A stretch of 64,000 nt of DNA from positions 186,001 to 250,000 of the forward strand of contig JALMLS010000520.1 of NCBI GenBank assembly GCA_038496445.1. Direction: 5' to 3'. The translations under genes and the position numbers were made by a program. Under the pieces are notes generated by a model that searched no databases, was not told where the DNA came from, and saw nothing but the letters and a program-made list of their open reading frames with translations. Positions within the stretch are counted from its first letter, which is position 1; each line of letters opens with the position of its first letter. This DNA is from Trichosphaerium sp. ATCC 40318. Its lineage: Eukaryota > Protista > Tubulinea. Below, in pieces: positions 7,357 to 63,925 of this stretch.

Positions 7357-8063
7357 ATGACTACAACCAATGAGGTACATATTGTAACACGCTATAAAAA
7401 GCTATTACTCTGTAAATACAGTTGACAACTTCTAAAACGCAGTGCTTTTTATTTCGGCTACCAGTCGAACTATTGCGGGATATTATAGATTTAAGCCCTG
7501 TAATTTATATAATGTGGCCAGAATTATGCAAAAAATCAGCGCTAGTAAGTGGTCGGTTTGATTCTGAGTTCAACAAACACAATAAATGGATATCTTGGAG
7601 TAAGTACATTACCTCGCCTAAAACTCAAAAGGATGGCTATGAAATTAGACGTGAGAGCTATTGGAAGAATGGTCTGCGTCATGGGGAGTGTAAACGATGG
7701 CGTTGGGGTAAATTAATGGAAGAGGTTTGCTATAGTAATGGGATAAAGGAAGGTGAATATACAGCATTTTTTGCGAATGGTAACTTGAAGTGTGTTTGTT
7801 TCTATGTCGATGGTAAGATTGATGGCGAGTATAAACATTGGCACAAGAATGGTAATATTAGAGAAGAGTATGTTTCTGTTTGTGGAAAGAGAGAAGGACA
7901 GCACAAGACGTGGTATCCAGAAGGTACATTGAAGTTTATTTGCGATTACAAGGATGGTAAGAAAGATGGAGAATTGAAAGAGTTTGATTCAGTTGGCCGG
8001 ATGCACGTGATGAAATATGTTGAGGGCTTTAAAACACAAAACGAAAAGTGTTGTCAAATGTAA
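7357..8063 (+). CDS. F-box-like + MORN-variant (YwqK-type) repeat protein
   Basis: Short exon MTTTNE, intron, then LFRLPVELLRDII (F-box-like) and about 5 repeats of type WHKNGNIREE...GKREG. Confidence 0.8.
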
Positions 8064-16205: not shown

Positions 16206-16814
16206 ATGGGTAAAAAAGCTACAAAAGAAGCTAAAAAACAAGATATAAACAGGCGCATAGAAGTAAAAGTACTTGGAGCAAGAGATACAGGGAAAACTGC
16301 TTTAGTAATGCGTTGTAGTGACTGGAATATCTTTTCTGAGCTAAAAACAGACTCTCTCATGCAGCCATCCGGTGATTGCTTTGGTTCTATAGACCATAAA
16401 GTAAATGGAGGCGTTTTAACAGTGATCGATACTGACTACGAGGAGAAAACTATCTCTACCATTCCCCGATTTGTTCAACAATACGATGCAATCATTTTAT
16501 GCTTTGATGCAAGAAATAAAGAAACCTTGAAGGAATTAAGAGATAGGTGGGTGCCTGAAGTGAATGAAAAGTATACTAAAGCTTTGGTATTCATTATTGC
16601 AACAATGTGTGATACTTATGGAGCAGGAGATGATTTAGACTTAGAAAAAAATGATGATTTAAAGTTTATTGTTGACTTTCTTTCTGAGTCTGGTCAACGT
16701 GGTCTTGTAAAGATTTATGGAAAAACAAGTGCTAAAGACAACACTAGGATTCATGAATTATATCAAGAAATATATGAGAAAGTCATGGAGTATCGACAAT
16801 CACATGAACAATGA
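16206..16814 (+). CDS. divergent intronless Rho/Ras-superfamily small GTPase
   Basis: G1 GARDTGKT, DAIILCFD, RWVPEV (Rho-like), G4-like ATMCD, G5 TSAK; G3 degenerate (IDTDYEE). Confidence 0.8.
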   Translation: MGKKATKEAKKQDINRRIEVKVLGARDTGKTALVMRCSDWNIFSELKTDSLMQPSGDCFGSIDHKVNGGVLTVIDTDYEEKTISTIPRFVQQYDAIILCFDARNKETLKELRDRWVPEVNEKYTKALVFIIATMCDTYGAGDDLDLEKNDDLKFIVDFLSESGQRGLVKIYGKTSAKDNTRIHELYQEIYEKVMEYRQSHEQ

Positions 16815-21548: not shown

Positions 21549-24500
21549 TTATTCAATTGCAGAGTATCTAAGTGACCTTCTACTTGTTGTTTTGTACACT
21601 GCGATATCGGCTAGTAGTTTGACATTTTCTTCATTCACTTCTACATTTTCTTTTTTTAGTTTGGCATTTTGCTCTAATAGTTTAGTGATTTGCGCATTTA
21701 GGTTGATTATCTTTTTCTCCAGTAGTTCGTTGTTGAGTTGTTCCGAATCCTTCAGCTTGGTGTCTGATTCCTTATGGACGCTGGCGCTTTCTTCCTTGAG
21801 CTTTGAGAGTTTTTCTGTTGATGGTACATCTTGCAAGATGGTGTTTTCTTCCTTCATCTTTGAAACATTTACTTTTAATGACTGATCTTGTATGCCTGGT
21901 TGGTCAACTTGGTCCAGTGTTGCAGCTGCCCATAATTGCCTTTACAGTATTAGTGCAATCGCTGATTTGTTTAGGTTCTTACCGTTCAGTTTTGAACTGC
22001 TCATCTTCGTCAGACAACTCATCCGACAATGAACCAGCATCTTCTGATTCTGAAAGATCCAATTTACTTGATGTCATTTTCACGTGTTCTATTAGTGTAT
22101 CGGTTAATTTATCCTTCCTTTTCCGTTTCCTAGGTTTTTTTACAACCTTCACAACATAGCGTGCAACTGCTTGAACATCTAAATAAAAATGTAAGAATCT
22201 TATTTGAAGATCTTTACCATTTACCTTGAGCGACAACCAACTCATCACGTGAATACTTGTCAACATTTTCTTTAACTGCTTGCCCCTTTTTGTTTATCAC
22301 TGCATAATGACTTTGGTATCCAGGTTTAATAGGTTTACCCATAAAGTTGTCGCTGTCTATAGGGTTTTCCGTTACCTACAGTACTATTAACAACGTCATC
22401 ACATTTAAAGTTGTGCATACAGGATACACATTCCCAGGAGTAACCAAACTCAGAATAAGTGTTTTTTCAGTTTTTGATGAGTCGTACAAGCAAGCGTATG
22501 TGATACTACTCTATTGTAAAAGTGTTAAAAAGGACTTGAAAGAAGTTGGTTAAGTACTGTAAAGTAGATTCCTTGTCCATAATATCCAGCATCCAATGAA
22601 CTTACAGTTCCAAATCCAGCTTTTACAATACTTGCAGCTGCTTCAGGAGTTGTCCCATGAACCATAAGCAGTACCGGCAACTAAGCAATTAGTCAAGAAA
22701 GATTGAGCTTAAAGATATTACCTGTTCTGAGTTGGTTGTCAAACTATTATCTTTCAGAGATGAAAACCTCTCAGCAATGCTGGCCTTTTGAGCATTGTCG
22801 CTCCAATCATTCTTACAAAATTTAGTAGGCAGTTCTCTAAAGTACATAAGCGCATTTAATTGAAACTGTGTGACCTATGAACAAGCTGCGAACGTACTGG
22901 TGCCTGTGTTTAAGTATTGTATTGTACATGCCAAAGTTTCGTGTCAAAACATCATTGCAAACAAGATGTGCTGATACAACACTCACTTGATCATATCCAT
23001 GCATTTTTGACATTTGTTCATGAAGAAACGCTAGTTCTCTCTTCTCAACAGTACCATTCTTGTCAAAAAGGTCTAACGTTCGGTAGTGTGTTGCCTTTTC
23101 GATAGTACCCCTTCAAGTATGTTAAGCGAGCAACAGGACACAAAAGTAAGTACTTGTTGTTTGACCTATCCCAGTTTTGTGCATACTCCAATCTCGGGTT
23201 CAAGTTCCACGACGGCTTACTTTGTAATCCTAACAGGGATTAGTTTTTAAACCAACGAGTATTGGTACCTGCTTCAACATCATTTAATGTTTGATTCGGA
23301 GAGATAGGGTGAATAGCATACTTGGTACAGTCACACTTTGAAGAACGATTAAGTGGTAACTTTATATGTGTTAGCAAACAAACTTGTATTAGATCAAGTA
23401 CCTGTTTGTTATCGCATTGCTTGACACAATAAGAGCACAAGAAACTATTAAACTGTCCGCCTACAAATTACCTATCAGCTGTATGTGTAAAATAATACTG
23501 ATACCTATATTTTGTTCCAAAGAGTTTATACACCATCCTTCTTCCGCACACAGTAGATCAAGATCATCGACACCAGTTTGTTTATTAGTAGTCCACATGT
23601 GTTCTGGTAAATCAAACAAAATACCTTCCATCAAGTCTCCTTGCTGAATCCAAAAGCTCTAAATACTCGCTTAGTTTTGAATATAGATTGAATAAACTGT
23701 GAAAAAAGCGTACCGAAGATTGGACAAATATGCGATTGTAAGTACAAATCAAGTTACAAATACCTTTCTTCATTGACAGTTGAAAATAAGAACGTGTTGG
23801 CTTTTTGTAAGATTAGGTGGACACTTCAATGACTGAACAGCGTACCAAATATTGTAACCACTTTGCAAGATTGCATCTCCATTGTGGATTACGTTTCATG
23901 TGAGCACATGATAGCCATATTGATCGACTTTCTTGTTGATCATTTGGAAAGTGCATTAATACAGTTTCAAACACCTTGGTATACGCAGGATCATTATCAA
24001 CAACAACATTTATAAATATGGTCTCAAAGCCGAATGTCTGTTTGCTCATAGTTCGTGAAAAAACATTGCTTGCGTTTGACAACAAGAGGAAAACTGAAGT
24101 TTTTTGAAGATGTGCTAAGAAACAATGTTAGTGTCTTTTCCTGGAACATATAGTATCACCTGCGTAAAGTAAAGGTGTCCACCCTTTGTTATCAACAGCT
24201 TCGATATCTGCTTTCGACGCAATTAACTGCTCAACAACTTTGCTGTGTCCGTGCATGGCTAACAAGTGTAAGAAATAAACTAATCAAAAAGGTACAAGCC
24301 TGCTATATGTAAAGCATTTTGTCCATCGTTGTTTGTAACCCCAACATCTGCTCCTGATTTTAGCAATAATTCAACAACATCAACATGACCATAGTATACT
24401 GTAAAGTGTGAGTAACATCCACTGTTTATGGCGCTGTACCTGCAACATGCAAAGGCGTAAATTGTTCTTTGTTTGCCGTATGAATATTTGCGTTGGCTTT

Positions 24501-24982
24501 GATCAATGAGGAAACAATAACAGTATGTCCAGTGGATGCTGCAAAGCGAGTAAGCTTTTGCAACAGTTTAAAAAAACAAAACGTACCTGCAAGATGTAAC
24601 GCCGTACATCCTTTGTCATTCGTAGCTTCAATGTTTGCTCCTGAGAGTAAACACATTGATACAACACTAGGCATACTACGAGCTAAAATGGGTTAATACA
24701 CAAAAACATCTAGAGACAAACCTGAATGCAGTAGAATATCATCGGCTGTCCCCTCTTTGCTTAGCTCCTTCTTGAGTTTATTGACTACAAGCAAGCTTAT
24801 GAATAAAACGAAGCTATCTTATTAACAGTACCTGTTGTAATATTCTTGTACAAGTAATGTTGTGAAAGCTTTAGTAACTCAGCCGAGAAAGCAAAATCAC
24901 CACTAATCTTTGCACGTGCGGGAAACGACCTTCGTATACTACCTATTATTACTCGCGGTTTTCCCTGGCAATGCATTGACAT
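21549..24982 (-). CDS. ankyrin-repeat PARP-family ADP-ribosyltransferase, copy 1 (4 ankyrin exons)
   Basis: Spliced exons give ankyrins, a Cys-containing middle region, then LLMVHGT (22651-22659)...GFG...AGYYGQGIYFT...YA..Y...LILSLVTPG...GYQSHY...RDELVV (E at 22241), a basic/acidic linker and a C-terminal coiled coil. Confidence 0.88.
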
Positions 24983-25662
24983 GAAGACGATAATCTCAAC
25001 TATGAGGTGTGGGTTCACAGCTGGCGCTTATTAATATTACTTTTCGTACACAAGACGGTTCGCTGTAAAAACAAATTAAAAAAACAACTTCGCTTTCATG
25101 ACTGCTTTAACCTGTGTCGTTGTATCTCTGAGTTTACTTTTTATTTCCCACGCGACAATAGCGCATTCTATGCGGCTATGACATTGTGGGAAGCTAATCT
25201 GCTTAAAACAGTAGCGACGAAGCCACTATGGCGAAGACATACTAGGAACTGGTACCGAATCAGGTAATCAGTCTGAAAACCTTTGTGAATAAACTAGCGT
25301 ATCACGTGATATGTGAAGGTCTGTTCGGAGCAAGCGTAGTAAATCTAAGTTCACGCCTAGGTGTTTTGGTGTTAAAGTCCGCCGGCATTTTTTTCGAACA
25401 AGCGGTTCGAAATATTGAAAACTTGGGAGCATTGGTTTGTTACGCTACGGTGCGTAGAATTAACTTGATATACTTCGCTACAACTAAGAATTTACAGACT
25501 TAGTTGTTCAAGCTAAAAGTCGTTAATAAATCACGTGTTCATTGGACAATAATCAGCTCTCACTGCGTATTATAGTACTTTAAAGATGTGGATATACTTT
25601 AAGCTATGACTTGGTTGTATGATACAGGTTTTTACTTTACAAGCATAGCGTATCTATTTGAG

Positions 25663-28600
25663 CTACTTCATGTTACTCTCAAGACTAGCAATTCTAGCTA
25701 ATAGTTTCATATTTTCTTCTTCTAGTTTAGCGATTCTATCAAGGTGCATGGCATTGCTTTTCTTCGTTTTGGCATTATCTTTCTGCAGTGTAGCATTTTT
25801 TTTCTCAAGTATTTTGTTGGCTTGTTTCAACTCCTTCAGTTTGGCGTTTGATTCCTTAGAGATGATGTTTTCTTCCTTCATCTTTGAAACTTTTACTTTT
25901 AATGACTGATTTTGTATGCTTGGTTGGTCAACCTTGTTCAAAGTTGCCGCTGCCCATAATTGTCTTTTGCAGTATTAGTACAATCACTGATTTGTTTATA
26001 TTCTTACCGTTTGGTTTTAGACTGATCATCTTCATCAGACAACTCATCCGACAATGAACCAATGCTTTCTGATTTTGAAATATCCTTCGATTTACTCAAT
26101 GCCATTTTCGCGTCTTCTAATGGGGTTTTGTTTGATTTTTGCTTTTTTTTGGTACTTTTTTTAATCAATCTCCGTTGTTTTGGTTTCTTTACAACTTTAA
26201 TAACATAGCGTGCAACTGCTTGAACATCTAAATAAAAATATAAGAATCTTATTTGAGAGATCTTTAACATGGCACCTTGAGCGACAACCAACTCATCACG
26301 TGAATAGCTATCAACATTTTCTTTCACTGCTTCTCCATTGTTGTTCACCACTGCATAATGACTTTGGTATCCAGGTTTAATAGGTTTACCCACAAGGTTG
26401 TCGCTGTCTATAGGGTTTTCCGTTACCTACAGTACTATTAACAACGTCATCACATTTAAAGTTGTGCGTACAGGATACACATTCCCAGGAGTAACCAAAC
26501 TCAGAATAAGTGTTTTTTCAGTTTTTGATGGGTCATAAGCGCAAGCGTATGTGATACTACTCTATTGTATAACTGTTAAAAAGGACTTGAAAGTAGTTGA
26601 TTGCGTACTGTAAAGTAGATTCCTTGTCCATAATATCCAGCATCCAATGAACTTACAGTTCCAAATCCAGCTTTTACAATACTTGCAGCTGCTTCAGGTG
26701 TTGTCCCATGAACCATTAGTAGTACCGGTAACTTAATAGACTAGTCAATTAACAAAGAGGTGTTACATGAATAAACATTACCTGTTCCGAATTGATTGTC
26801 TTATTGTTCAGAGATGAAAACTTCTTGGCAATACTGGCTTTTTTGGAATTCTTTTTCCACTCGTCTTTACAAAATAAAGTAGGCAGCTCCCTACAACGTA
26901 GTTAGTATTAAATGGAAAGTACATGTGAACATACTGGTGCCTGTGTTTAAGTATTGTATTGTACATGCCAAAGTTTCGTGTCAATACATCATTGCAAACA
27001 AGATGTGCTGATACAACACTCACTTGATCATATCCATGCATTTTTGACATTTGTTCATGAAGAAACGCTAGTTCTCTCTTCTCAACAGTACCATTGTTGT
27101 CGAAAAGGTCTAACGTTCTGTAATGCGTTGCTTTTTTAATGGTACCCCTACAAGTATGTTAAACGAGCAACAGGACACAAAAGCCGAGTACTTGTTGTTT
27201 GACCTATCCCAGTTTTGTGCATACTCCAATCTTGAGTTCAAGTTCCATGACGTCTTACTTTGTAATCCTAACAGGGATTAGTCAACATTTCGTCTTGAAA
27301 TCAAGGAGTACTGGTACCTGCTTCAACATCATTTAATGTTTGATTCGGGGAGATAGGATGAATAGCATACTTGTTACAGTCACATTTAGAAGAACGATTA
27401 AGTTTTACCTTGTACGTGTAAGATGAAAAACGTGTATGTTTGATTGATGTACATGTTTAGTATCAGGTTGCCGAGCGCAATAGCTACATAGGAATTTCTT
27501 AAACTGTCCGCCTATAAATATATCAGTATTTGTATTTTTAAAACATTACACGTGTTTTAGTACTAAAGAAATATACAGACCTATGTTTTTTTCCAAAGAG
27601 TTTATACACCATTCTTGTGCACACAGTCGATCAAGATCAGTAATACCAGTTTGTTTATTAGTAGTCCACATGCCTTCTGGTAAATCAAACAAAATACCTT
27701 CCATCAAGTCTCCTTGCTGAATCCAAAAGCTCTAAATACTCGCTTAGTTTTGAATATTGAATAAACTGTGAAAAAAGCGTACCGGAGCTTGGACAAATAT
27801 GCGATTGTAAGTACAAATCAAGTTACAAATACCTTTCTTCATTGACAGTTGAAAATAAGAACGTGTAGGCTTTTTGTAAGATTAGGTGGACACTTCAATG
27901 ACTGAACAGCGTACCAAATATTGTAACCACTTTGCAAGGTTGCATCTCCATTGTGGATTGCGTTTCATGTGAGCACATGATAGCCATATTGATCGGCTTT
28001 CTTGTTGATCATTTGGAAAGTGCAGCAAGAGAGTTTCAAACACCCTGATATAAGCAGGATCATTATCAACAACGTTCATGAATATGGTTTTAAAACCAAA
28101 CGTCTGTTTGCTCATAGTTCGTGAAACGACATTACTTTCATTGGATAATATGAGGAAAATAGAAGGTTTTTCAAGTTGCGCTAGCAACATGTTAATATAA
28201 TTGTTCGAGGCGAAGATGGCTTTACCAGAGTAAAGCAAAGGCGTCCATCCTTTGTTATCAACAGCTTCTATACTTGCGTTTGATGCAATTAGCTGTTCAA
28301 CAGATTTGCTGTGTCCATATATAGCTAGCACGTGTTAGAAATAAAACTAGTTGTAAGACCTACCAGCTAGATGTAAAGGTGTACGTCCGTCGCTGTTTAC
28401 AGATTCAATATTTGCCCGTGAGTTAATCAATAATTTAACAACATCAGTGTACCCATAACGTGCTGATAAACGTGAGTTACATTGCGATTTGTATGTTAAG
28501 TAATACCTGCATTGTGTAGAGCTGTCCAGCTTTCATTATTTATGGCATCAACACTCACTCCGGATTTGATCAATAATCCAACAACATCACAGTGCCCACG

Positions 28601-29909
28601 ACGTGCTGAGAATTATGAGTTATACATCAGAATTTAGAATATCAAGGTACGTACCTGAAACATGTAAAGCTGTCCACCCTTCGCTATCTACAGCGTGAAC
28701 ATCTGCATTTGCTTTGATCAACAATGCAACGATATCAGCGTGTCCAAGACACGCTACGGGTGAATTACATTTATAGTACGTCCACTAAAAGTACATACCT
28801 GCTTTGTGTAACGCTGTCCATTTATCTGCATCTACAGTATCGAGGTTCGCATTTGCTTGGACCAATTTCGCAATGACATTGGCATGTCCATGATGTGCTA
28901 AAAAGTGATGTAGGTACAAATTAACATCGGAAATCATACCTGCTTTGTGAAGTGCTGTGCACTTTTTATTGTCAGCAACATTAATATTTACATTCGCTTT
29001 GAGCAATAGCGCAACAATCTTAGTGTAACCCTGAGATGCTAAAATGTGTCAAATAGCAAAGATGTAGAAGAAAACCCGTACCTGCGTTGTGTAAAGCAGT
29101 ACATTTATGATTATCAGCAGAATGAATGTTCGCTCCTCCCTCGATTAATGATGCAACGACATTGGCATGTCCATGTTGTGCTAACACGTAAGTTATACTG
29201 TAGTCCACAACAACAACGTACCTGCGATATGCAAGGCTGTACACCCTTCTGTATCTGCGGTATCTAAGTTTACATTTCCTTGAATCAATAACGCAACAAT
29301 GTCAGTTTGTCCATGACGTGCTAAGAAGTATGAGTTACTTACATTGTATACAGTTGACAATAACATGCCTGCTTTATGTAAAGCTGTCCATTTTTCTTTA
29401 TCTACGGCATCAATATCCGCACTTGATTCAATCAATAATTCAACAATATCCGTTTGTCCGTGACGCGCTGAGAAGTGTGAGGAGGTACGCAAATACCACG
29501 ATAATGTACCTGCAAGATGTAACGCTGTACACCCTTGTGTATTTGTAGCTTCAATATTTGCGCCAGCTTGTAAACACATTGATAAAATATTATGCATGCC
29601 GCCACGTGCTAAATTGGGTTGATACACATTAACCTCCAATAGTATTTTGTACAAACCTGAATACAGTAAAATATCATTGGCTGTCTCGTGTTTACTTAGC
29701 TTCTTCTTGAGTTTGTTGACTAATAAATTTTAAGATATTACAAAGTTATCTCATATTAACAGTACCTGTTGTAATATTCTTGTACAAGTGACGTTTTTGT
29801 AGTTTTATTATTTCAGCTACGAAATTAAAGTTAGATCTTTGCACGTGCGATAACAAACTTGTTTAACACCTTTTATTGTTCGCGGTTTTTCTTCGTCACG
29901 ATTTGACAT
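25663..29909 (-). CDS. ankyrin-repeat PARP-family ADP-ribosyltransferase, copy 2 (10 ankyrin exons)
   Basis: Tandem paralog of 21549-24982; HGT at 26702-26710, GIYFT, RDELVV (E at 26292); ten 33-aa ankyrin exons between about 28230 and 29610. Confidence 0.88.
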
Positions 29910-30406
29910 TTCTGTTGCGGTCACGCAAGTTGATGATAAAAAATATTAAGCTTCACATTCTATTAACAAATTGTGAGGTCAAAACACTTTGAAAAATGAC
30001 GGCATTGAGTACTATGAGTGGCGAAATACTACAGCTTCACGTGTAGCACCAATATCAACACGTGTATTTCCGACTGAAACAACTGCCAGTACATCGATTA
30101 CTTTTTAACCACGTGACAACAGTAGTAGGTGTTTATGTTTACGAGTGACGCTGCAAGAGCAGTGTAATTGCAGAAGAAAAATCGCAATACCTACGTCGCA
30201 ATTCCCTCTGACAAGATATCGCTTGTACCAGTGAGAAACGACTCGGTTTACCATGCCTCTCGGAACCAGTTCATGTACTCAATCCTCCTTTGCTACTTTA
30301 GGAGCGGCCATAAAGCTGTACACCACTTTGAGTACGTGACCGAGACATAGCGTAGTCAAAATGGAGTCAATTTCAAAGCAAATCACGTAGTACTGCTATC
30401 TCAACC

Positions 30407-31461
30407 ATGCTTCTTCGATTGAACGCTCGTGCCGCTATCAGACCAACTACAAGCTATGCTCAAGGTAATTAGAGTCTTATTCGCTGTATAATGATTTATT
30501 GCAGATATAAAGCGTGTACAAGTGCGCAGCTACAATTTTAGCGCCGTTTTGCGCAATGAAGGCGAAACTGAATCAAAGGCAAGAAAACCGTCTATAACCA
30601 CTCCAACAGCTTCTTTATATTTTACAAAGCCAGTAGACTCCTTCAAACAAAATAACGTATTTGTAGGTCCACCCTTCCATGATTGACCCAAACACTCAAA
30701 GATTCGTCGCACAAAGAGCACTAGACGCCAGATCAAGAGTACGCTTTGTCATAACTTTACACTCTAGCGCTGGTTTTACCTCTAATACTTGCTTGTCCAG
30801 TGTGGATACCCTAATTGTCCAAACCCACGTATTGAAAAGAACACACTCCGCATTGGTGATAAATACGGTAGATTCCACGCCGGCGCGTACAAAATCAGAT
30901 GGTACGTTTCTCTTACAAGCCCTTACATACGCACCAAACAAAAAACACTCATTATTATCATTGCTTGCCTTTATACGCAAAAATACGGCTAAAACATGTC
31001 ACTCAAGCACCAGGATGCGCAATTCACGCTATTAAAAGTTTTTCCTTTGCATAAACCGTTTTTATTTTTCAGTTTGTTAGCGCAACTACCTCAACCGTGA
31101 AATATACAAAGAATTATTCACGTTGCTTGCAAAATGCTATTCTGCTTGAAAAAAAACAAAACAATTCTGACACAAAAGCTCGTTTGTCTTTCTTTGTACC
31201 AATTCTACCTTCGTTATGTTCATACAATATTATAGGTATAAACCGGACTGCAAGAAACTCATTTCAAAATTTGTAAAAGCAAGAAAACCAGAAAACATTA
31301 TCAAATCTGAAGATGATGTTGAGGGCTTTGACAAACTTAATGAAGAGGACCAAGCACTCGTAAGAGAACTCATCGATAACACTCAAGATGAGAGACAAAG
31401 AAGAGAAGAACGTATGCGTGCTATGCTCGGTGAAGATATGGATGATGATGAAGACGATTAG
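30407..31461 (+). CDS. stand-alone PARP-type zinc finger (zf-PARP) protein with presequence-like N-terminus and acidic tail
   Basis: Spliced: RFVAQRALDARSRCGYPNCPNPRIEKNTLRIG...RWYKPDC...DDVEGFDKLNEEDQALVRELI, matching the zf-PARP pattern. Upstream exons MLLRLNARAAIRPTTSYAQ... are inferred. Confidence 0.8.
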
Positions 31462-52608: not shown

Positions 52609-54521
52609 ATGGAAAGCCTCAGGTTTCCAATTAATTTGCAAACAGCTTATGAATACTATCTCCAAAAGCATAATGATGATTTTCAACACGTAAAATCAAA
52701 AGAAACACCCATACAGCGTGATATGTTTGATGCTGACGTCATTTCTGCGATTAATACCGTTCTTGCCTCAGCAGAAGCAGAAATGAAGTCCAAGTTAGCC
52801 GCAGTACTCTCAAACTTTACTAAGGCGCTCCCTCGCTCTACTGACAAGCACAAAGACTCGGTCGCTTCAGAGCAAACTAAAAACGTCTTGCGAACAACGT
52901 ACGTGCCACTCTTACCCACAGAATAAGTTATGACATAGCCATGGCACCTGTATCAAGGCGTTCGAACCAGCAAAGTTCAGTTTTCGTTGAACATCATTTT
53001 GTGTTAAACTAACTTTTTTAGACCAACAGCAATTGGCACGTGTTTATTAGACCTCCCAGTAGAAACTATGTGCTTGATTCTACAATACACATCTACGGCA
53101 AGGTACAGTGCTGCACAGACATGTAAATCATTCGCAGATATTATACATCATGTAATTGGCTATGTCACTGCAAAAGTAAAGCCACATGATGCACTTGCTA
53201 TTCGTCACTACAAAGGTAGGTTGTAACATCTTATACAACATATTTGTAGATAATGATTTGTATATTTACCTTTCTTCTAGGTGTGATGACAAACACTTTG
53301 ATAACTGTTGATGCCATGTACAACAATACAACACATTGGTTTTCAGGATGTAAAAAACTTGCCTTTCTTTATAGTTTAAAAGAAGTTCAACATCTTTCTG
53401 GTATTCACAGTATCGATGTTTCACATACAAATATATCACATGAATCCATCAAAGGGCTTGCTGGTGTACATACAATTAATCTTAAACATACTCCAGCGAC
53501 AAATGAAAGCATTGCGTATCTAAAGGGTGTACATACTATTAATCTTACTTCCACCAAAGTTTCTGATGTAAATGCCCTTCAAGGCGTTCACACATTAGTC
53601 CTCCGTTGTACTTGGATAGACGATGAAGGTATAAAGGAACTAAAAGGTGTACATACAATTGATCTTAGCAATTGTAGCTTTATATCAGATAAAGGTTTGA
53701 AAGGCCTTGTAGGAGTACATACAATTAATCTTCATGGAACCAATGTGAAAAACCAAGGTCTGGCTTACCTAAAGGGTGTACATAGTATTAATGTTAGTAG
53801 CTGCTCAAGTATATCAGATCAAGGTATAAGGGAACTAAAAGGTGTACACACCATTGACCTCTTTGATACCTCAGTATCAGATAAAGGTGTCAAAGCACTT
53901 GCTGGCGTTCATACCATTAACTTGAGTGGCACTAAAATAACAGATATAGGCATTCAAAAGCTTAAAGGAGTTCATATCATCGACCTGGCTGAAACTAAAG
54001 TCACTGATGAAGGAATAAAAGCACTCAAAGGTGTTCATAATATTAACCTGAGTGGGACATCAGTAGCAGATGAAGGTGTGAAAGCGCTTGCTGGTGTTCA
54101 TACTATTTACCTTAGTGGTACTAAAGTAACAGACAAACGCATTCATGCACTCAAAGGTGTTCACACAATTGATCTTTCCAATACTAGTATAACAGGTAAA
54201 ACTCTATCTTCATTGGCTGGTGTTCACACCATTGATCTTTCAAAATGTCCCATTGTTAATGGTCTATCAGCGCTCAAAGGTGTTCATACAATTTACTTGC
54301 AATATACAGACATTACAGACAACGATCTAAAAGCTTTAGCTGGTGTTCATACAATTGATCTAACTGGCTGCATTTCTGTTACAGATAAAGGCGCTATGGC
54401 ACTTGCTGGCAGTCTGCGTAAGATTTCAATTGTTGAATCTAAAATAGGTTATTATACATTAGATAAACTTCCATGTGTAGCGCTTTTTGATGGCCTTGGT
54501 GGCTGGGATACGAGAGTGTAG
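52609..54521 (+). CDS. F-box + LRR (GVHTIDLS-type, about 16 repeats) protein
   Basis: Exon 1 helical domain, exon 2 LLDLPVETMCLILQY...AQTCKSFADIIHHVIGY (F-box), exon 3 with 21/23-aa LRRs TDEGIKALKGVHTIxL. Confidence 0.88.
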
Positions 54522-54771
54522 TTAGAATCAAGCCCTACTTTGAAGAGCCTTAATTATGCTGCTCAATAAAGTTGTCAAACTACGAATATTTTTTATTCTT
54601 TTGTAAAAATCAATGTGAATACCATTCTGTTGTTCGAATCTTTTACAAATAAATGGTTAAGCTTTTGTAGGTTGTTCTAGAGTTGATTCATGTGGCAGTA
54701 AACTAGCGTTGACTCAGACTTTTTACAATATGAGAAAACACGTGAGCCCAAATAACGGACCACAACAAATC

Positions 54772-56106
54772 ATGAGTTTTTCTTGTTTATTAGTAGAAAG
54801 CGCACTAGAATATTATCGTAAGCGCCACGCTGAACGGTTCGGTAAAGTAATGGCAATACAACCCCAAACAGTCATGGCAAAGGTAGAAAGTGTAATTTCG
54901 AAGTTAAATATGAGTATTGCATCACAGCTCGATCAAGTTCTTTCAAAACTCTCAGATTCAATTGGTTCTACTCAAGCTAGCCAGTTAACACCTTCATCTA
55001 ACGTTGAATATCACAAGCACAAAAGAAAAGAGATGTACATTAAAAAAAAAGAGTGTAACAGTAAACAACCAATGCCACGTGAAGAACTGAATATTATCAC
55101 TTTTCTCCCACCTGAAGTTATTTCAAATATTCTAGAGTACACAGATCAAAAAGGTAGATTTTCTGTTGCTCAATCGTGTCGCCTTATGGCTGATCTCATT
55201 CATCATGTTGTTGGATATAAACATGTTTATCTCAAGCAATACCAAGATATTTTAAAGATAAGACAGTACGAGGGTATTATGAAAAACACCGTTATTCAGA
55301 TGGATGTGTGGTATATGAATGATGATTCAACAGTATATTCGTTACTATCAGGGTGTTGTAAACTACAACTATCAAGATATAACAGACATATTCTTGACGG
55401 TGATCTGCAAGAAATAGCAAGTGCAAACCAAGTTAGCTTTATGGATCTTTCCGGGGGATCCAGAAGTCTTACAGATGAAGGTATTAAAGCACTTGCTGGT
55501 ATTCATACAATTAACCTGCGAGAGTGTAAGTTTGTGACAGACGAAGGTGTTAAAGCGCTTGCTGGAGTTCATACCATTGACCTTAGCCACTGTATTCAAG
55601 TTACTGACGAAGGCATTAAAGCACTTGCTGGAGTACATACCATAAATCTGAATGATAACTATATGTTGACCGATGAAGGTATAAAAGCTCTTGTGGGTGT
55701 ACATACAATTAATCTAAGGAACTGTGAAAATGTATCTGATGAAGGTATTAAGATGTTAAAAGGTGTACACGAAATTAGCCTCAATTATACTTCAGTCACT
55801 GATGAAGGTGTCAAAGCACTTGCTGGCGTTCATGCTATTGACCTTTCCAATACATTTGTTACGGATGAAGGCATTAAAGCGCTTGCAGGAGTACATACAA
55901 TCCATATTATTGGTTGTGACAACGTGACAGATAAAGGTATCACTTCATTGAACGGTGTTCATACTATTAGTATTGGCAGAAACGTGACAGATAAAGGTGT
56001 TGAAGCATTGGAACGAGTTCATACCATTTTCTTTTCTCATGAAAATACCAACATATCAGCATTGTGTATTGCCAGGCTAAAAAAAGCCTCAGTGAATGTG
56101 ATTTAG
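54772..56106 (+). CDS. F-box + LRR (about 9 repeats) protein, tandem paralog of 52609-54521
   Basis: ITFLPPEVISNILEY...AQSCRLMADLIHHVVGY; repeats VTDEGIKALAGVHTI; N-terminal ALEYYRKRH matches AYEYYLQKH of the paralog. Start could be 54730. Confidence 0.88.
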   Translation: MSFSCLLVESALEYYRKRHAERFGKVMAIQPQTVMAKVESVISKLNMSIASQLDQVLSKLSDSIGSTQASQLTPSSNVEYHKHKRKEMYIKKKECNSKQPMPREELNIITFLPPEVISNILEYTDQKGRFSVAQSCRLMADLIHHVVGYKHVYLKQYQDILKIRQYEGIMKNTVIQMDVWYMNDDSTVYSLLSGCCKLQLSRYNRHILDGDLQEIASANQVSFMDLSGGSRSLTDEGIKALAGIHTINLRECKFVTDEGVKALAGVHTIDLSHCIQVTDEGIKALAGVHTINLNDNYMLTDEGIKALVGVHTINLRNCENVSDEGIKMLKGVHEISLNYTSVTDEGVKALAGVHAIDLSNTFVTDEGIKALAGVHTIHIIGCDNVTDKGITSLNGVHTISIGRNVTDKGVEALERVHTIFFSHENTNISALCIARLKKASVNVI

Positions 56107-57597: not shown

Positions 57598-58884
57598 AGT
57601 GGTTTGTACATGCGAAAGGATAAAAAATAAAGAACTTTATTGCGGTATTGGGTTTTGGTTCTACTTGCACTTGTATCTCTGATCTCACAGGTAAGTTGTT
57701 ATGTAAGTCTTCTGCCGTAAAGTATTTCATAGCACCTAACTGTAAACTCTGTACGCTTAGTTAATTCTTGCGGCGCTATCAAAACGATAGAAAATGGCGA
57801 CATCTTCAACACCAATAGTACAACCAGCTTGAAATTCGAATCACTAGTGCCACTGCTGGTTCCCATGCATACCTACTTACCATAGACAGGGTTGACAAAG
57901 CAAAGGTCCGTACATAGTCTGAGTTTTTTCTTTTTTTTTGTGATCGACAAGCTCTCTAATTGTTTTTGGTTGTTCAGGTTCAGACAACAAACCTACCACT
58001 CATAGGTAAGTCTTTTACCTGCTTCTGACCAGCTTGACTCACGTGGTAAAAAAATCCCGAGAAACAAATGGTGCGAGTTTCATTTTTAAACTATAAGCAG
58101 CATAGAGGATGTACGCTCAGATATTGACAACTCACCAATTTGCTTTTATTCTTTTGAACGTTAGTCCTAACATTTGTGTTGTAGCGCTCGCATTGGTTAT
58201 TAAATTACGTCTTGATAGATAAAAATAATAAGGTAAGATTTGCTAAAAAAACCTCAGGTTTATTTTCTACACGCAAAGAAGTCTAAGTTGTCATGATTTT
58301 ACCCTCTGTTTAACACAATTTTCCACAAAACGCTTCAAAATAACCAAATTATTTTTTCATGTACATGTGCGTTCGTGGAACGTGGCTACATGTAATAAAT
58401 CCAATAATATCTTTCGTCGTGGCCATTTTTTGCCTTTTTTAACTAGAAATGTGAAACGTCAAGGTCTTTTATGGCGATCACGTTTTTTTTTTGTTTTATG
58501 TAACTTTCTTTTGCGAACGTTGTATCCTTCCACAATTACAATTGGTGAATACAAAAAGTCAAATATCGCGTGACAATCTAAATACAACTAAAAACCGTTC
58601 GTAATTTTCAAAACGGACCATTGTTGCGAAAACTACACATTCTGACACTGTCTTTTTGATTTTTGAAAAAAAAACACGTGCATGTCATCTGGCGTTTGGT
58701 TTGTCAATACTTAAATTTACATTGTCGCTGCAGCATTTTTAGTGTAAAACAAAAGTAATAATCGACAAAAACCCACCTACCAACCAAAAAGACAGTGTCA
58801 GAATGTCGTTTGCAAATTACGGCTTCACAATACGATAGTTCTATTCTCAATAAATTCTTACTTTTCTTTTTCTTTAGAAAGGAA

Positions 58885-60516
58885 ATGTCTTCTTCTTCTT
58901 TGAGTTTACTTGATCTCCCACATGAAATTCAACAAGAAATCTGTACATTCAACATGGAAACTTTCACAAAATTTCATACTTTATCAAAGAACGCAGCAAT
59001 CAATACACATTTCGATGAATCTCTACAACGCAAGGGAAAATGGATCAGATGGTACAAAACAGGAAAAGTACAGTCCATTGAATATTCGAAAAACGGGCTA
59101 AACCAAGAATGGTATCAGAATGGTCAAATAAAAGAACAATGGAAGGTAGTTAATGGCAAAAGGCATGGTAATTCCAAAATGTGGTATGACAATGGACAAC
59201 TTGAAGCACAGTGCACGTTTGTTAAAGGCACGCAACTTTGTGAAACTAAAGAGTGGTATAAAAATGGGAACATTAATGCACAAAGTATGTGGGTTGATGG
59301 TAAACTAAGTGGTGATGTGAAAGTATGGTATGATAACAAACAACTTTCTTCGTGGGAGATTTATTTGGATGGTAAGAGAAACGGTGAAGCCAATTGGTGG
59401 TATGAAAATGGGCGACGTAATACACAAACAATGTGGGTTAACGACAAGCGAAACGGTGAAGCCAAGGAGTGGTATGAAAATGGACAACTTAAGGCACAAT
59501 CCATGTGGGTTGATGACAGACAACATGGTCAATGCAAAGTATGGCATGAAAATGGACGAATTAAGTCACAAGCCATGTGGGTGGATGGCAAGTTACATGG
59601 TGAATCTAAGCAATGGTATGAAAATGGACAACTTAAGGCACAAGCCACGATGGATGACAAACAATGTGGTGAATCTAAGCAATGGTATGAAAATGGACAA
59701 CTTCAGGCACAAGCCATGTGGGTTGATGGTAAACAACATGGTCAACATAAAGACTGGTATGTAAACGGACAACTTAAGTCACAAGCCATGTGGATTGATG
59801 ACAAGAGACAAGGCGAAGTTAAGGGATGGTATGAAAATGGACAAGTTCAGGGACAAGTGATGATGGCTGAAAACAAACGACATGGTGAATGCAAATTATG
59901 GTATAAAAACGGAAAACTCCAGCAAACAAGCATGTGGATAGATGGCAAGAAACACGGTGAAATCAACGAGTGGTATGAAAACGGACAACTTAAGGAACAA
60001 GCAAATATGGTTTACAATAAACGGAATGGAGAATTCAAAAGCTGGTACGACAATGGAAAACTGAAGATACACAGCTTGTGGGTTGATGGTAAACAAAACG
60101 GAGTTACCAAAGAGTGGTATGGAACTGGTCAACTATTTCGACAAAGCACATGGGTAGATAATAAGAAACATGGCGAAACCCATGAGTGGTATAAAAATGG
60201 CCAACTTATGACCCAAAGCATGTGGACTGATGGGAAATTATATGGTACAATGAAACAGTGGAGTGAAGATGGAAAACCAACGGAAGAAGACGATAAACAA
60301 ATCAAGAGATGGTTTAGTAGTCGAAAAACCAAGAAACAAAATCGCTTTGGTATTACCTACAACAAAAACAAGAAAAGAAGCAGCAGTTTAATGATAAGAT
60401 CATTCAACACAATATTGTTCCCTTTCCATATCTTACGTCGTTTTGTGTGGGCATGGTTGAGGTACTTTTCAAGTGCATTTTATTCGTCAATGATGTTTTG
60501 GTCAAAAAAGAAATAA
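58885..60516 (+). CDS. F-box-like + MORN-variant repeat protein (about 18 x 24 aa)
   Basis: SLLDLPHEIQQEIC then WYENGQLKAQxMWVDGKxHGExK repeats; basic/hydrophobic C-terminus. Confidence 0.88.
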   Translation: MSSSSLSLLDLPHEIQQEICTFNMETFTKFHTLSKNAAINTHFDESLQRKGKWIRWYKTGKVQSIEYSKNGLNQEWYQNGQIKEQWKVVNGKRHGNSKMWYDNGQLEAQCTFVKGTQLCETKEWYKNGNINAQSMWVDGKLSGDVKVWYDNKQLSSWEIYLDGKRNGEANWWYENGRRNTQTMWVNDKRNGEAKEWYENGQLKAQSMWVDDRQHGQCKVWHENGRIKSQAMWVDGKLHGESKQWYENGQLKAQATMDDKQCGESKQWYENGQLQAQAMWVDGKQHGQHKDWYVNGQLKSQAMWIDDKRQGEVKGWYENGQVQGQVMMAENKRHGECKLWYKNGKLQQTSMWIDGKKHGEINEWYENGQLKEQANMVYNKRNGEFKSWYDNGKLKIHSLWVDGKQNGVTKEWYGTGQLFRQSTWVDNKKHGETHEWYKNGQLMTQSMWTDGKLYGTMKQWSEDGKPTEEDDKQIKRWFSSRKTKKQNRFGITYNKNKKRSSSLMIRSFNTILFPFHILRRFVWAWLRYFSSAFYSSMMFWSKKK

Positions 60517-62058: not shown

Positions 62059-62916
62059 TTAGATCCACACTTTGAAATCATCAAAGAAAGCAGTATCGGT
62101 TGTAGGAGACCACCATCTGCTATCACTTGCACTTCCTCCTCTGTACGTGTTAAAGATCAAGTTGTTAATCTTCACATTTGATTTTCCAGATTTTCTGTAA
62201 AGAATGTTCCTCCTCTCCAATTCAAGTCTTCCGTTGACATACATTTTCAAAATACCGTTTCTACTTCCCGGTGTGTTGAGCTTTATGTATTGTTTGATCG
62301 TGTACCATTTGTTCTTTTCTAGTCCTCTCATAATCTCGATCTCAACACCACACTTGTTGATATCGCGATCAGGGAAATAAGTGTAAGCAACAAGCCTGAC
62401 AGGTTTACCAGCACCGGATTGCCTCCACATTAATCGAACAGAGAAGCCGTTGTCAATGTTGTTTCTATTCTTCGTACATCCAGAAGGAATAGCACCATTA
62501 CCACTTAGAGCAGAGCCGCCCAATCCAGGTAGCTTTCCACCGTACGCCCATACAAAGCCTGAGTCGAATTTAACTTTGTATTCAAGTGTTGCTTCTGTGA
62601 CATCGCTAAATTGTTTGTCGAACAAGAATCCGCCGTTGTGACCTCCTGCTGAATTTTTGAGGTACTGAGTGCGTATCTGTTTGTTGATGATAGCAGTTTG
62701 ATGAGGCCACGTGACACCGTTTCCGTCTAAGCCCCTGATTGCGCCAGAAGTTCTCGCTCTGATTGGACCGAAATCATTTGTTGCTTTTTGGATAGTGTAT
62801 CGGTAGTTACGAGTGTGGTGGTTGAAATCTTCGTTTATTACAAGACTTGCGGCGTAAGATAAAGCGAAGAGCGTTAACGCTATCGATAAGAGTTGGGAAA
62901 AGCGTATAGCTTTCAT
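62059..62916 (-). CDS. secreted polysaccharide lyase family 14 (alginate/glucuronan lyase-like), intronless
   Basis: Signal peptide MKAIRFSQLLSIALTLFALSYAA; PL14 motifs TLEYKVKFDSGFVWAYGGKLPGL, GFSVRLMWR, WYTIKQYIKLNTPG...NGILKMYVNG, FNTYRGG. Confidence 0.88.
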   Translation of the reverse strand: MKAIRFSQLLSIALTLFALSYAASLVINEDFNHHTRNYRYTIQKATNDFGPIRARTSGAIRGLDGNGVTWPHQTAIINKQIRTQYLKNSAGGHNGGFLFDKQFSDVTEATLEYKVKFDSGFVWAYGGKLPGLGGSALSGNGAIPSGCTKNRNNIDNGFSVRLMWRQSGAGKPVRLVAYTYFPDRDINKCGVEIEIMRGLEKNKWYTIKQYIKLNTPGSRNGILKMYVNGRLELERRNILYRKSGKSNVKINNLIFNTYRGGSASDSRWWSPTTDTAFFDDFKVWI

Positions 62917-63925
62917 GTTGCGTTGCTTGTGTTGTTGTTGTGACAATGGTTTAATATGGTATGGCTTAGTTTGTTCTCCATTCACAATTTCTTGCGCTAG
63001 TCGTCTAAGTTTGGTATTGTACTAGCGCCCAGTATTGGAATGGTTGGAAGATAGTTCAAGTTGTACAAGCAACTGTCGCAAAAGACACGTGATCAAGATT
63101 GAAACAGCAAAAAAGTTTACCAAACGATAAAGTTAAATTGTGCGTAGCGCTATTCTACAAAACTCATCAGCTCCATTAGTAATCATGCCATAAATACTAC
63201 AACGAACAAAGAACGGCTTATACTGCGCTGCTATTATACTAGCGATTGAATTTTCCTCGGGAAAAGAACCCGACTTTCGTTCACATCATGACACCTAAAT
63301 GAACTACAAAAGTAAGCTAGATGCCCTAATACAAAAGCGGAGGAATACTTACTACGACAAATGTGCTCTAAAATGAAAAAGAAACTAACAACATTTCCAG
63401 TTAGGAGTCAGACTCTATAAATACACGTGACAGATTGTTCTTTTACTTTATGAATAGGGTCGCTTTATTTAGCAACAAACAATCCAAAAGGTTTTGTCGT
63501 GACGTCACAACTACAATTTTAGCTATGTAGTGTTAATAATTAAAATACTCCAACCCAATGAAGATGGATTTTACGTTAAAATACTCGGGCAATTTATCCC
63601 GAGCACGATGGAGATTTTTAGCGATTTTTCATTTCGTCTTTGATTTTTCTTCCTGATAGTAATTTCACCAAAGACTTTCAATGTACTCCTAGTCAAGGGT
63701 AGAAGCGCTATTTACAGTACCTAGTTGTAAACCAATAGGTACACTTGTGAATTAAATACAAATGAAACTATGCATATTGCCAGGCTTCGACAAACCCTAA
63801 ACTCAAAAACTTGTATAAAAGAGCTTACTTACAAGCGTATAGCTTGTAGAGCCATGCCTACAATTTAAAAAAATGACGCTATACAATTACAAACACATGT
63901 TTTTCGATGTGTCACATTGGTATTC

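Follow-up and report, generated by a model that had tools for sequence, protein, structure and literature searches.

Ankyrin repeats and a PARP catalytic domain have been combined several times independently (PMC2964712, PMC4245714). The tankyrases (PARP5a/5b, Clade 4) are restricted to animals (PMC2964712), and ankyrins also accompany a PARP domain outside the tankyrase clade in the ankyrin-WGR-PRD-PARP proteins of Clade 1A (Dictyostelium ADPRT3, C. elegans PME-5), which supply an amoebozoan precedent (PMC2964712, PMC4245714). Here we describe two tandem genes, A and B, from the amoebozoan Trichosphaerium sp. ATCC 40318, found in a stretch of 64,000 nucleotides (nt) that we call the window (assembly GCA_038496445.1, contig JALMLS010000520.1, positions 186,001 to 250,000). 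On sequence grounds they belong to a small PARP subfamily of protists, a branch that has not been described. Our preferred reading, to which we give a probability of roughly 0.7, is that both genes belong to this small protist branch and that each window protein works as a self-associating ADP-ribosyltransferase that recruits its targets. The draft genome of Trichosphaerium has 37.7% GC, a mean intron length of 75 bp and an enrichment of F-box and MORN genes; the genome paper does not mention PARP and ankyrin genes (PMC10521059), and our literature search found no paper on such a PARP family in amoebae.

Gene models and transcripts

The locus holds two genuine protein-coding genes, A and B, which arose by tandem duplication in a eukaryote with short introns. 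The original prediction, made by a model from the DNA letters, placed two head-to-tail minus-strand paralogs at 21549-29909, and these coordinates are exact (the gene A stop codon ends at 21549 and the gene B ATG begins at 29909). It also proposed a spliced product composed of ankyrins, a Cys-containing middle region, a PARP domain and a coiled coil, and this order was recovered in both in-frame models. The window has eukaryotic character (36–40% GC), and its listing of open reading frames (ORFs) between 20.5 and 31 kb holds only short minus-strand fragments with ankyrin, PARP-like and coiled-coil peptides. The PARP domain, which had been predicted to lie scattered and hidden from the ORF track, is indeed spread over six exons (20–25 in gene B). 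Annotation based on ORFs overlooks these genes, a point relevant to gene calling in short-intron protists.

Self-comparison of the sequence revealed two tandem copies whose 3′ 2.5 kb are 84% identical, introns counted, and no third copy of the ankyrin-PARP gene was found within the 64-kb window. We traced gene B by hand from the three-frame translation, adjusting it to joints seen in RNA, and carried the model over to gene A by alignment. Two automated models were discarded: a shortest-path model with the fewest introns kept open introns as exon sequence, and a dynamic-programming model with cheap introns collapsed to an artefact of 46 amino acids (aa). The introns of the two genes (n = 43) have a median length of 45 nt and range from 39 to 69 nt; 41 are GT-AG and 2 are GC-AG. 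Splice sites are conserved between the genes at every position except the intron-1 acceptor of gene A, where the AG is lost and 54 nt are read through in frame, and the gene A reading frame is intact across all 19 exons.

Gene B is expressed. Contigs from two public RNA runs with near-identical sequence (X1 and X2, both small) were placed on positions 23960-29950, and spliced contigs with GT..AG-type joints confirm 15/25 gene B junctions, bearing out the splicing that had been proposed (Table 1). One contig of 1621 nt reproduces gene B from 27731 to 25654 with 0–2 mismatches per exon and skips exactly the predicted introns. X2 contigs confirm the first three introns together with several of the 99-nt ankyrin exons, including the one with a GC donor, and RNA pieces stop precisely at the ankyrin exon borders 29369/29467, 28364/28462 and 28507/28606. 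Further details defined by RNA are the 63-nt exon at 29657-29719, the exon starting at 27869 and the end (donor) of exon 19 at 27192. The exon 15 donor is best placed at 27783: no exon length but 87 nt maintains the frame, the donor hexamer GTACGC also occurs elsewhere in the gene, and a contig starts inside the exon (27811).

Transcripts other than that of gene B also align here. Some contigs on the gene B 3′ exons carry gene A bases (at 26340, 26346 and 26985) at a depth of 83–180, compared with 28.8 for gene B, and since this exceeds the depth of the gene B transcript itself, an A-like transcript is probably expressed. In run X1, 22/25 placed contigs have <95% identity. RNA depth reaches 390–880 over two conserved PARP exons (26560-26759 and 26960-27159), contributed by paralogs of <90% identity, and the RNA variants at 26648-26686 are found in neither of the two genes. 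Because low-identity contigs accumulate on PARP exons to such depth, these data indicate a family with many expressed members.

An RNA contig otherwise identical to gene B differs from the genome at 26178, 27096 and 27102, and has the gene A base at all three positions. This could be a strain-level polymorphism produced by gene conversion, or an assembly chimera.

The catalytic domain and its relatives

Both genes are predicted to encode a PARP domain with a complete His-Tyr-Glu triad. The motifs VHGT, GYYGQGIYFT and RDELVV are present as originally quoted; HGT and GxGxYF align with the His and Tyr of PARP12, and DELVV pairs with DEFVVY of PARP4, its Glu falling on the catalytic Glu of that enzyme. 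These alignments put the triad in place in A and B, as had been claimed. Across most of its length the gene A domain is 92–99% identical to that of gene B. Two further motifs, PGYQSHY and PGN, are invariant and specific to the family.

Profile and structure comparisons agree on a PARP fold. Exon 22 alone (44 aa) matches PF00644 at positions 51-90 with E 0.0015; its 18.5 bits fall short of the cutoff, as its small size would predict. Two relatives, P0001 and P0002, score 30.9 and 36.5 bits against the PF00644 cutoff of 26.7. Spliced A and B align to positions 7-255 of the family hidden Markov model with E values of 2.8e-83 and 3e-85, respectively, and residues 419-1029 of gene B align to P0001 with E 1e-126. 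In a tree, A and B are sisters, and a grouping of the pair with P0001 and P0002 is supported at 100/99. The AlphaFold2 model of P0001 residues 1-425 has a predicted local distance difference test (pLDDT) score of 80–95 over the PARP part, and a Foldseek comparison of this model with the PDB returned PARP3, tankyrase 1/2, PARP4, PARP12 and PARP10 (E about 1e-10, target TM score 0.65–0.76). The predicted ADP-ribosyltransferase fold was recovered by Pfam in P0001 and P0002 and by AlphaFold2 and Foldseek in P0001, and, by analogy with P0001, the window proteins would share it.

Relatives are few. When the 70-aa exon 20 was searched exhaustively against 1.84 billion representatives, only two true relatives emerged, P0001 and P0002; two other matches, P0003 and P0004, were rejected as internally repetitive, unrelated proteins. 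A profile search returned 35 relatives, most of them without a name; they come from transcriptomes and from metagenomic contigs of eukaryotic appearance, and one (P0019) is from Trichosphaerium sp. ATCC 40318 itself (MMETSP0405). In all, the subfamily accounts for about 40 of 5.8 billion sequences. P0001, P0002 and the window genes have in common the middle region, PARP domain, linker, KLWAA motif and coiled coil. Since an ankyrin ORF lies immediately upstream of P0001 on the transcript contig L001, the architecture recurs as a whole.

Among solved structures the catalytic domain is closest to PARPs other than tankyrases. Family profiles searched against all solved chains matched PARP12 (E 7.7e-9), PARP10 (about 3e-6), PARP4 (1.2e-5) and ZAP (3.5e-5) best, the C-terminal half of the family matched PARP4 (E 5e-5), and weaker matches were to PARP15, PARP14, PARP1, PARP16 and PARP2. 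There was no tankyrase chain among the best 60 of 69 matches (E up to 1) and none in 57 (E up to 10). Pfam searches found no SAM, WGR (PF05406) or PRD (PF02877) domain in the exons or in full-length P0001, and no NTPase switch (NACHT, NB-ARC) in the exons tested or in P0001 and P0002. Because no SAM, WGR or PRD domain was found, the window proteins appear to be neither tankyrases nor Clade 1A ankyrin-PARPs. The original view that they are not canonical tankyrases stands: there is no SAM match, the coiled coil follows the catalytic domain, and the profile matches listed include no tankyrase.

Two observations concern the domain itself. In alignment A1, P0005, P0007 and P0008 read QGT where the catalytic HGT is expected; P0005 also has two PARP-like domains. 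The QGT members may be inactive or may bind NAD+ differently. A PDB search with a 44-aa exon gave a TAL-effector match (E 1e-37), which we rejected as an artefact: about 17 weak repeat matches, all to a fortuitous likeness (LPVL..HG.TPE), were added together. It is by chance that the exon peptide at LPVLLMVHGTTPEAAASIV (26609-26740, minus strand) looks like the TAL-effector repeat core.

Ankyrin arrays, accessory regions and divergence of the pair

The ankyrin array is built from symmetric exons that encode one repeat each, and the locus is a clean RNA-supported case of this arrangement. All gene B ankyrin exons are flanked by phase-1 introns of 39–49 nt, one of them with a GC donor, and the first 13 introns of the gene are all phase 1. 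Single ankyrin exons exceed the Pfam Ank and Ank_4 cutoffs, and their matches start at profile position 11, meaning that each exon holds one repeat in a shifted register. Between A and B only the first (83%) and last (81%) repeats are orthologous; the other ankyrin exons have 44–73% nucleotide identity to each other, and none exceeds 73% within gene B. Recent tandem duplication of exon-intron units was considered and rejected, since inter-ankyrin introns are unrelated, being barely more alike than other introns (normalized score 0.09 vs. −0.03). These comparisons indicate that the repeats are old and that the difference between 10 and 4 repeats does not come from recent tandem expansion. Among the positions that vary most within the repeats are those that form the binding surface in ankyrins at large; variability there is generic to ankyrin arrays and gives no evidence for an arms race.

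The middle region is conserved in P0001 and P0002, and the AlphaFold model of P0001 shows it as helical with low pLDDT. Its exons have no Pfam match, and atlas searches with it gave only subthreshold leads, to clusters containing PARP_reg (score 0.67 or lower). Both exons of the Cys-rich insert are spliced into an RNA contig; the insert is absent from P0001 and P0002 in the alignment and has no Pfam match. The gene B linker holds 19 Lys or Arg and 10 Asp or Glu residues in 63 aa, a layout common to gene A, P0001 and P0002. The tail exon has weak Pfam matches to bZIP_2, KASH_CCD and other coiled-coil families, and a Pro-free heptad stretch ends the protein in 4/4 cases (A, B, P0001 and P0002).

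The two halves of the pair have diverged differently. Synonymous divergence (dS) between A and B is 0.67 in the ankyrin part and 0.20 in the PARP domain, and the A/B alignment is a mosaic in which blocks of 92–99% identity, containing identical runs as long as 110 nt, alternate with blocks of 55–70%. Because the 92–99% blocks span exons and introns between the 55–70% blocks, the alignment shows patchy gene conversion of the 3′ halves. The locus is a duplicate pair in which the effector half appears to have been patchily homogenized and the repeat half to have diverged separately. The ratio of nonsynonymous to synonymous divergence (dN/dS) is 0.22 in the middle region, 0.29 in the PARP domain, 0.48 in the tail and 0.35 in the aligned ankyrins, the last being a pairwise value for arrays in which only two repeats are orthologous. 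These ratios indicate purifying constraint throughout and give no sign of diversifying selection. The label "diversifying" in the original prediction found no support in these tests: dN/dS is below 1 everywhere, the ankyrin exons, at 50–73% nucleotide identity, are old and their variable positions generic, and neither an NTPase nor another receptor core is present.

Table 1. Features of genes A and B, in window coordinates
Feature	Position	Strand	Description
Gene B	25663..29909	−	26 exons, 1029 aa; ATG at 29909, TAG 25665-25663; in-frame spliced model
Gene B residues 1-51			Short basic N-terminus and capping half-repeat
Gene B exon 3	29657..29719	−	N-terminal capping half-repeat; both junctions in X2 contigs; gene A counterpart 24722-24784
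Gene B ankyrin array, residues 52-381	28226..29608	−	Ten repeats, each encoded by an exon of exactly 99 nt
Gene B middle region, residues 382-630, exons 14-19	27192..28180	−	About 250 aa, predicted helical; gene A counterpart 23154-24114
Cys-rich insert, gene B exons 17-18, residues ~550-599	27318..27511	−	50 aa, CxxC ... CxC; gene A counterpart 23269-23460
Gene B PARP domain, exons 20-25, residues ~630-869	26187..27147	−	Predicted; motifs VHGT, GYYGQGIYFT, PGYQSHY, DELVV
Gene B triad codons	His 26710-26708, Tyr 26617-26615, Glu 26294-26292	−	His743/Tyr774/Glu851
Gene B linker, residues 870-930	26008..26186	−	Lys/Arg cluster resembling a nuclear localization signal, then acidic Ser-rich patch
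Gene B last exon, residues 931-1029	25663..25963	−	KLWAA motif, predicted coiled coil with terminal four-heptad leucine zipper; gene A counterpart 21549-21939
Gene B RNA-confirmed junctions	29870/29816, 29766/29719, 29657/29608, 28507/28462, 27915/27869		
Gene B RNA-confirmed junctions, ten more	27581/27511 to 26008/25963		Acceptor 27731 likewise confirmed
Gene A	21549..24982	−	19 exons, 873 aa; ATG at 24982, TAA 21551-21549
Gene A ankyrin array	24160..24682	−	Four exons of 96, 99, 99 and 99 nt; one GC donor
Gene A PARP domain, exons 13-18	22140..23110	−	Predicted; His565, Tyr596, Glu673

The composition, intron size and F-box, MORN and leucine-rich repeat (LRR) genes of the window agree with the published Trichosphaerium genome (PMC10521059). 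Long single-exon ORFs on the plus strand (7422-8063, 53253-56106 and 58795-60516) have F-box-like N-termini and MORN repeats or LRR arrays, and a 202-aa ORF at 16206-16814 (plus strand) resembles a small Ras/Rab-like GTPase. At 62059-62985 (minus strand) lies an ORF of 308 aa without introns, whose product is a PL14-type polysaccharide lyase (PF21294) with 65% identity to proteins of Cyclobacteriaceae and other Bacteroidota, a candidate for bacterial gene transfer into a eukaryotic contig. The ORF at 30789-30989 (plus strand), with the pattern CxxxxC ... LRIG ... H, had no zf-PARP Pfam match when searched as a single ORF; the gene around it probably needs splicing before a domain search.

Proposed function and comparison with known systems

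In the function that we propose, the task of the ankyrin array (10 or 4 repeats) would be to capture protein targets, and the His-Tyr-Glu PARP domain would move ADP-ribose from NAD+ onto the bound targets or onto the enzyme itself. The C-terminal leucine-zipper coiled coil would dimerize or oligomerize the enzyme, in the role played by SAM in tankyrases, and the basic cluster after the catalytic domain would serve nuclear import. We infer catalysis, in the form of either mono- or poly-ADP-ribosylation, as well as target binding, oligomerization and localization; the cellular role could be ordinary regulation or conflict with viruses or bacteria.

Several points weigh against this reading. The suggested roles in nuclear localization and oligomerization are read from sequence composition. 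Fold and Pfam membership draw on relatives that are 40–60% identical, plus exon-wise matches, and the subfamily is not uniformly canonical, as Gln replaces the catalytic His in some members. Exon identity between A and B (88.2%) is no higher than intron identity (87.4%), so part of the apparent conservation reflects gene conversion and not selection. Finally, RNA depth is zero in both runs over the 5′ part of gene A (23960-25559); its 5′ end is a prediction of the model, and its expression is putative.

The same gap in RNA could mean that only gene B is functional and that its duplicate, gene A, is silent or in decay. The loss of the intron-1 acceptor AG with its 54-nt in-frame read-through and the presence of six fewer ankyrin repeats than in B point the same way, but we consider decay improbable: the frame is intact in 19 exons, every other splice site is kept, dN/dS lies at 0.2–0.35, and RNA contigs with gene A bases occur at a depth of 83–180, both runs being small. 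A reading of both genes as housekeeping enzymes, the amoebal counterparts of tankyrases (Clade 4) or of Clade 1A PARPs, could appeal to the shared ankyrin-then-PARP order and His-Tyr-Glu triad, to tankyrase among the best structural matches and to the weak atlas lead (score 0.67 or lower) to PARPs with a helical regulatory domain. However, structural similarity is generic across PARPs, and the lack of a SAM, WGR or PRD match in the exons or full-length P0001, the absence of tankyrase from the profile matches listed and the repeat numbers (10 and 4 vs. 15–18) make this very unlikely. Ankyrin arrays are common in giant viruses, and the window is rich in F-box, MORN and LRR genes. Genes with F-box, MORN and LRR domains have been attributed largely to giant-virus transfer (PMC10521059), and the ankyrin-PARP genes could have been acquired from a giant virus, as proposed for their F-box/MORN neighbors. 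We find this scarcely credible for genes with 18–25 spliceosomal introns each, whose relatives come from transcripts and from contigs of eukaryotic character. When 2.9 million viral contigs were scanned with the family profile, the single match, to the high-GC contig L004, was spurious, as that contig has no ORF where the match lies.

A weightier alternative is that A and B are diversifying innate-immune or conflict receptors, in which a variable ankyrin sensor of a viral or bacterial factor triggers an oligomerizing, ADP-ribosylating effector. It gains from the arrays of 10 and 4 repeats with orthology at only the first and last, from the higher dS in the ankyrin part than in the PARP domain (0.67 vs. 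0.20), from the symmetric phase-1 cassette exons, which permit in-frame repeat gain and loss, and from the many expressed paralogs suggested by RNA contigs. The nearest solved relatives, PARP12, ZAP, PARP10, PARP14, PARP15 and PARP4, would also suit it. PARP4, 9, 13, 14 and 15 are reportedly fast-evolving in host–virus conflict. Several PARPs of this kind are described as evolving rapidly in such conflict (PMC4038475), and Trichosphaerium has had heavy gene traffic with giant viruses (PMC10521059). We nonetheless regard this alternative as unlikely, given that dN/dS is below 1 everywhere (aligned ankyrins included, at 0.35), that the variable ankyrin positions are generic, that the ankyrin exons are old, their identity within gene B never exceeding 73%, and that neither an NTPase switch nor a death-type domain is present. 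The basic cluster resembling a nuclear import signal equally fits a regulatory enzyme, and direct analysis covered two copies only. Amoebozoa are natural hosts of giant viruses, and a more speculative extension, which we hold to be unlikely as well, is a large amoebal family that joins a conserved, conversion-homogenized PARP/coiled-coil effector to interchangeable repeat sensors, with phase-1 cassettes for in-frame growth, loss and shuffling, as an ADP-ribosylation defense against giant viruses or intracellular bacteria. If true, this would be a protist parallel to vertebrate antiviral PARPs that works without an NTPase switch, and a large, infection-responsive family would extend the link between ADP-ribosylation and host–parasite conflict to Amoebozoa. 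Otherwise, the locus would represent a tankyrase-like system with a different oligomerization module.

Taken as self-associating, target-recruiting ADP-ribosyltransferases, the window proteins resemble several known systems in part. With NLR/STAND receptors they share a repeat array, an effector, an oligomerization module and an apparent lineage expansion, but they differ in having no central NTPase switch and no detected positive selection. PARP12, ZAP/PARP13, PARP10, PARP14/15 and PARP4 are their closest solved relatives by profile. The vertebrate mono-ADP-ribosyltransferases and vault PARP carry CCCH, WWE, macro, BRCT and vWA domains, which are absent from the window proteins. PARP4 has in common with the window genes the His-Tyr-Glu triad and the PGY-x-S motif, whereas PARP12 has Ile at the position of the catalytic Glu that the window genes keep. 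The likeness to Clade 1A lies in the occurrence of ankyrins with PARP outside the tankyrase clade; in contrast to Clade 1A, the window proteins have a coiled-coil tail and no detectable WGR or PRD, and their catalytic domain is nearest PARP12, PARP10 and PARP4, not PARP1 or PARP2.

The tankyrases offer the closest parallel in layout: ankyrins that recruit targets stand at the N-terminus, a His-Tyr-Glu PARP domain stands at the C-terminus, and self-association has a separate module. By this analogy the working logic is likely the same: recruit, oligomerize, ADP-ribosylate. The components differ. In place of SAM, before the catalytic domain, the window proteins have a coiled coil after it; instead of 15–18 repeats they have 10 (B) and 4 (A), each plus a capping half-repeat; they include a 250-aa, predicted helical, Cys-containing middle region; and their catalytic domain is not tankyrase-like by profile. 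Together, these comparisons document a further ankyrin-PARP combination, in which the ankyrins are followed by a new, predicted helical region with Cys residues, then by a His-Tyr-Glu PARP domain of divergent sequence and a leucine-zipper tail.

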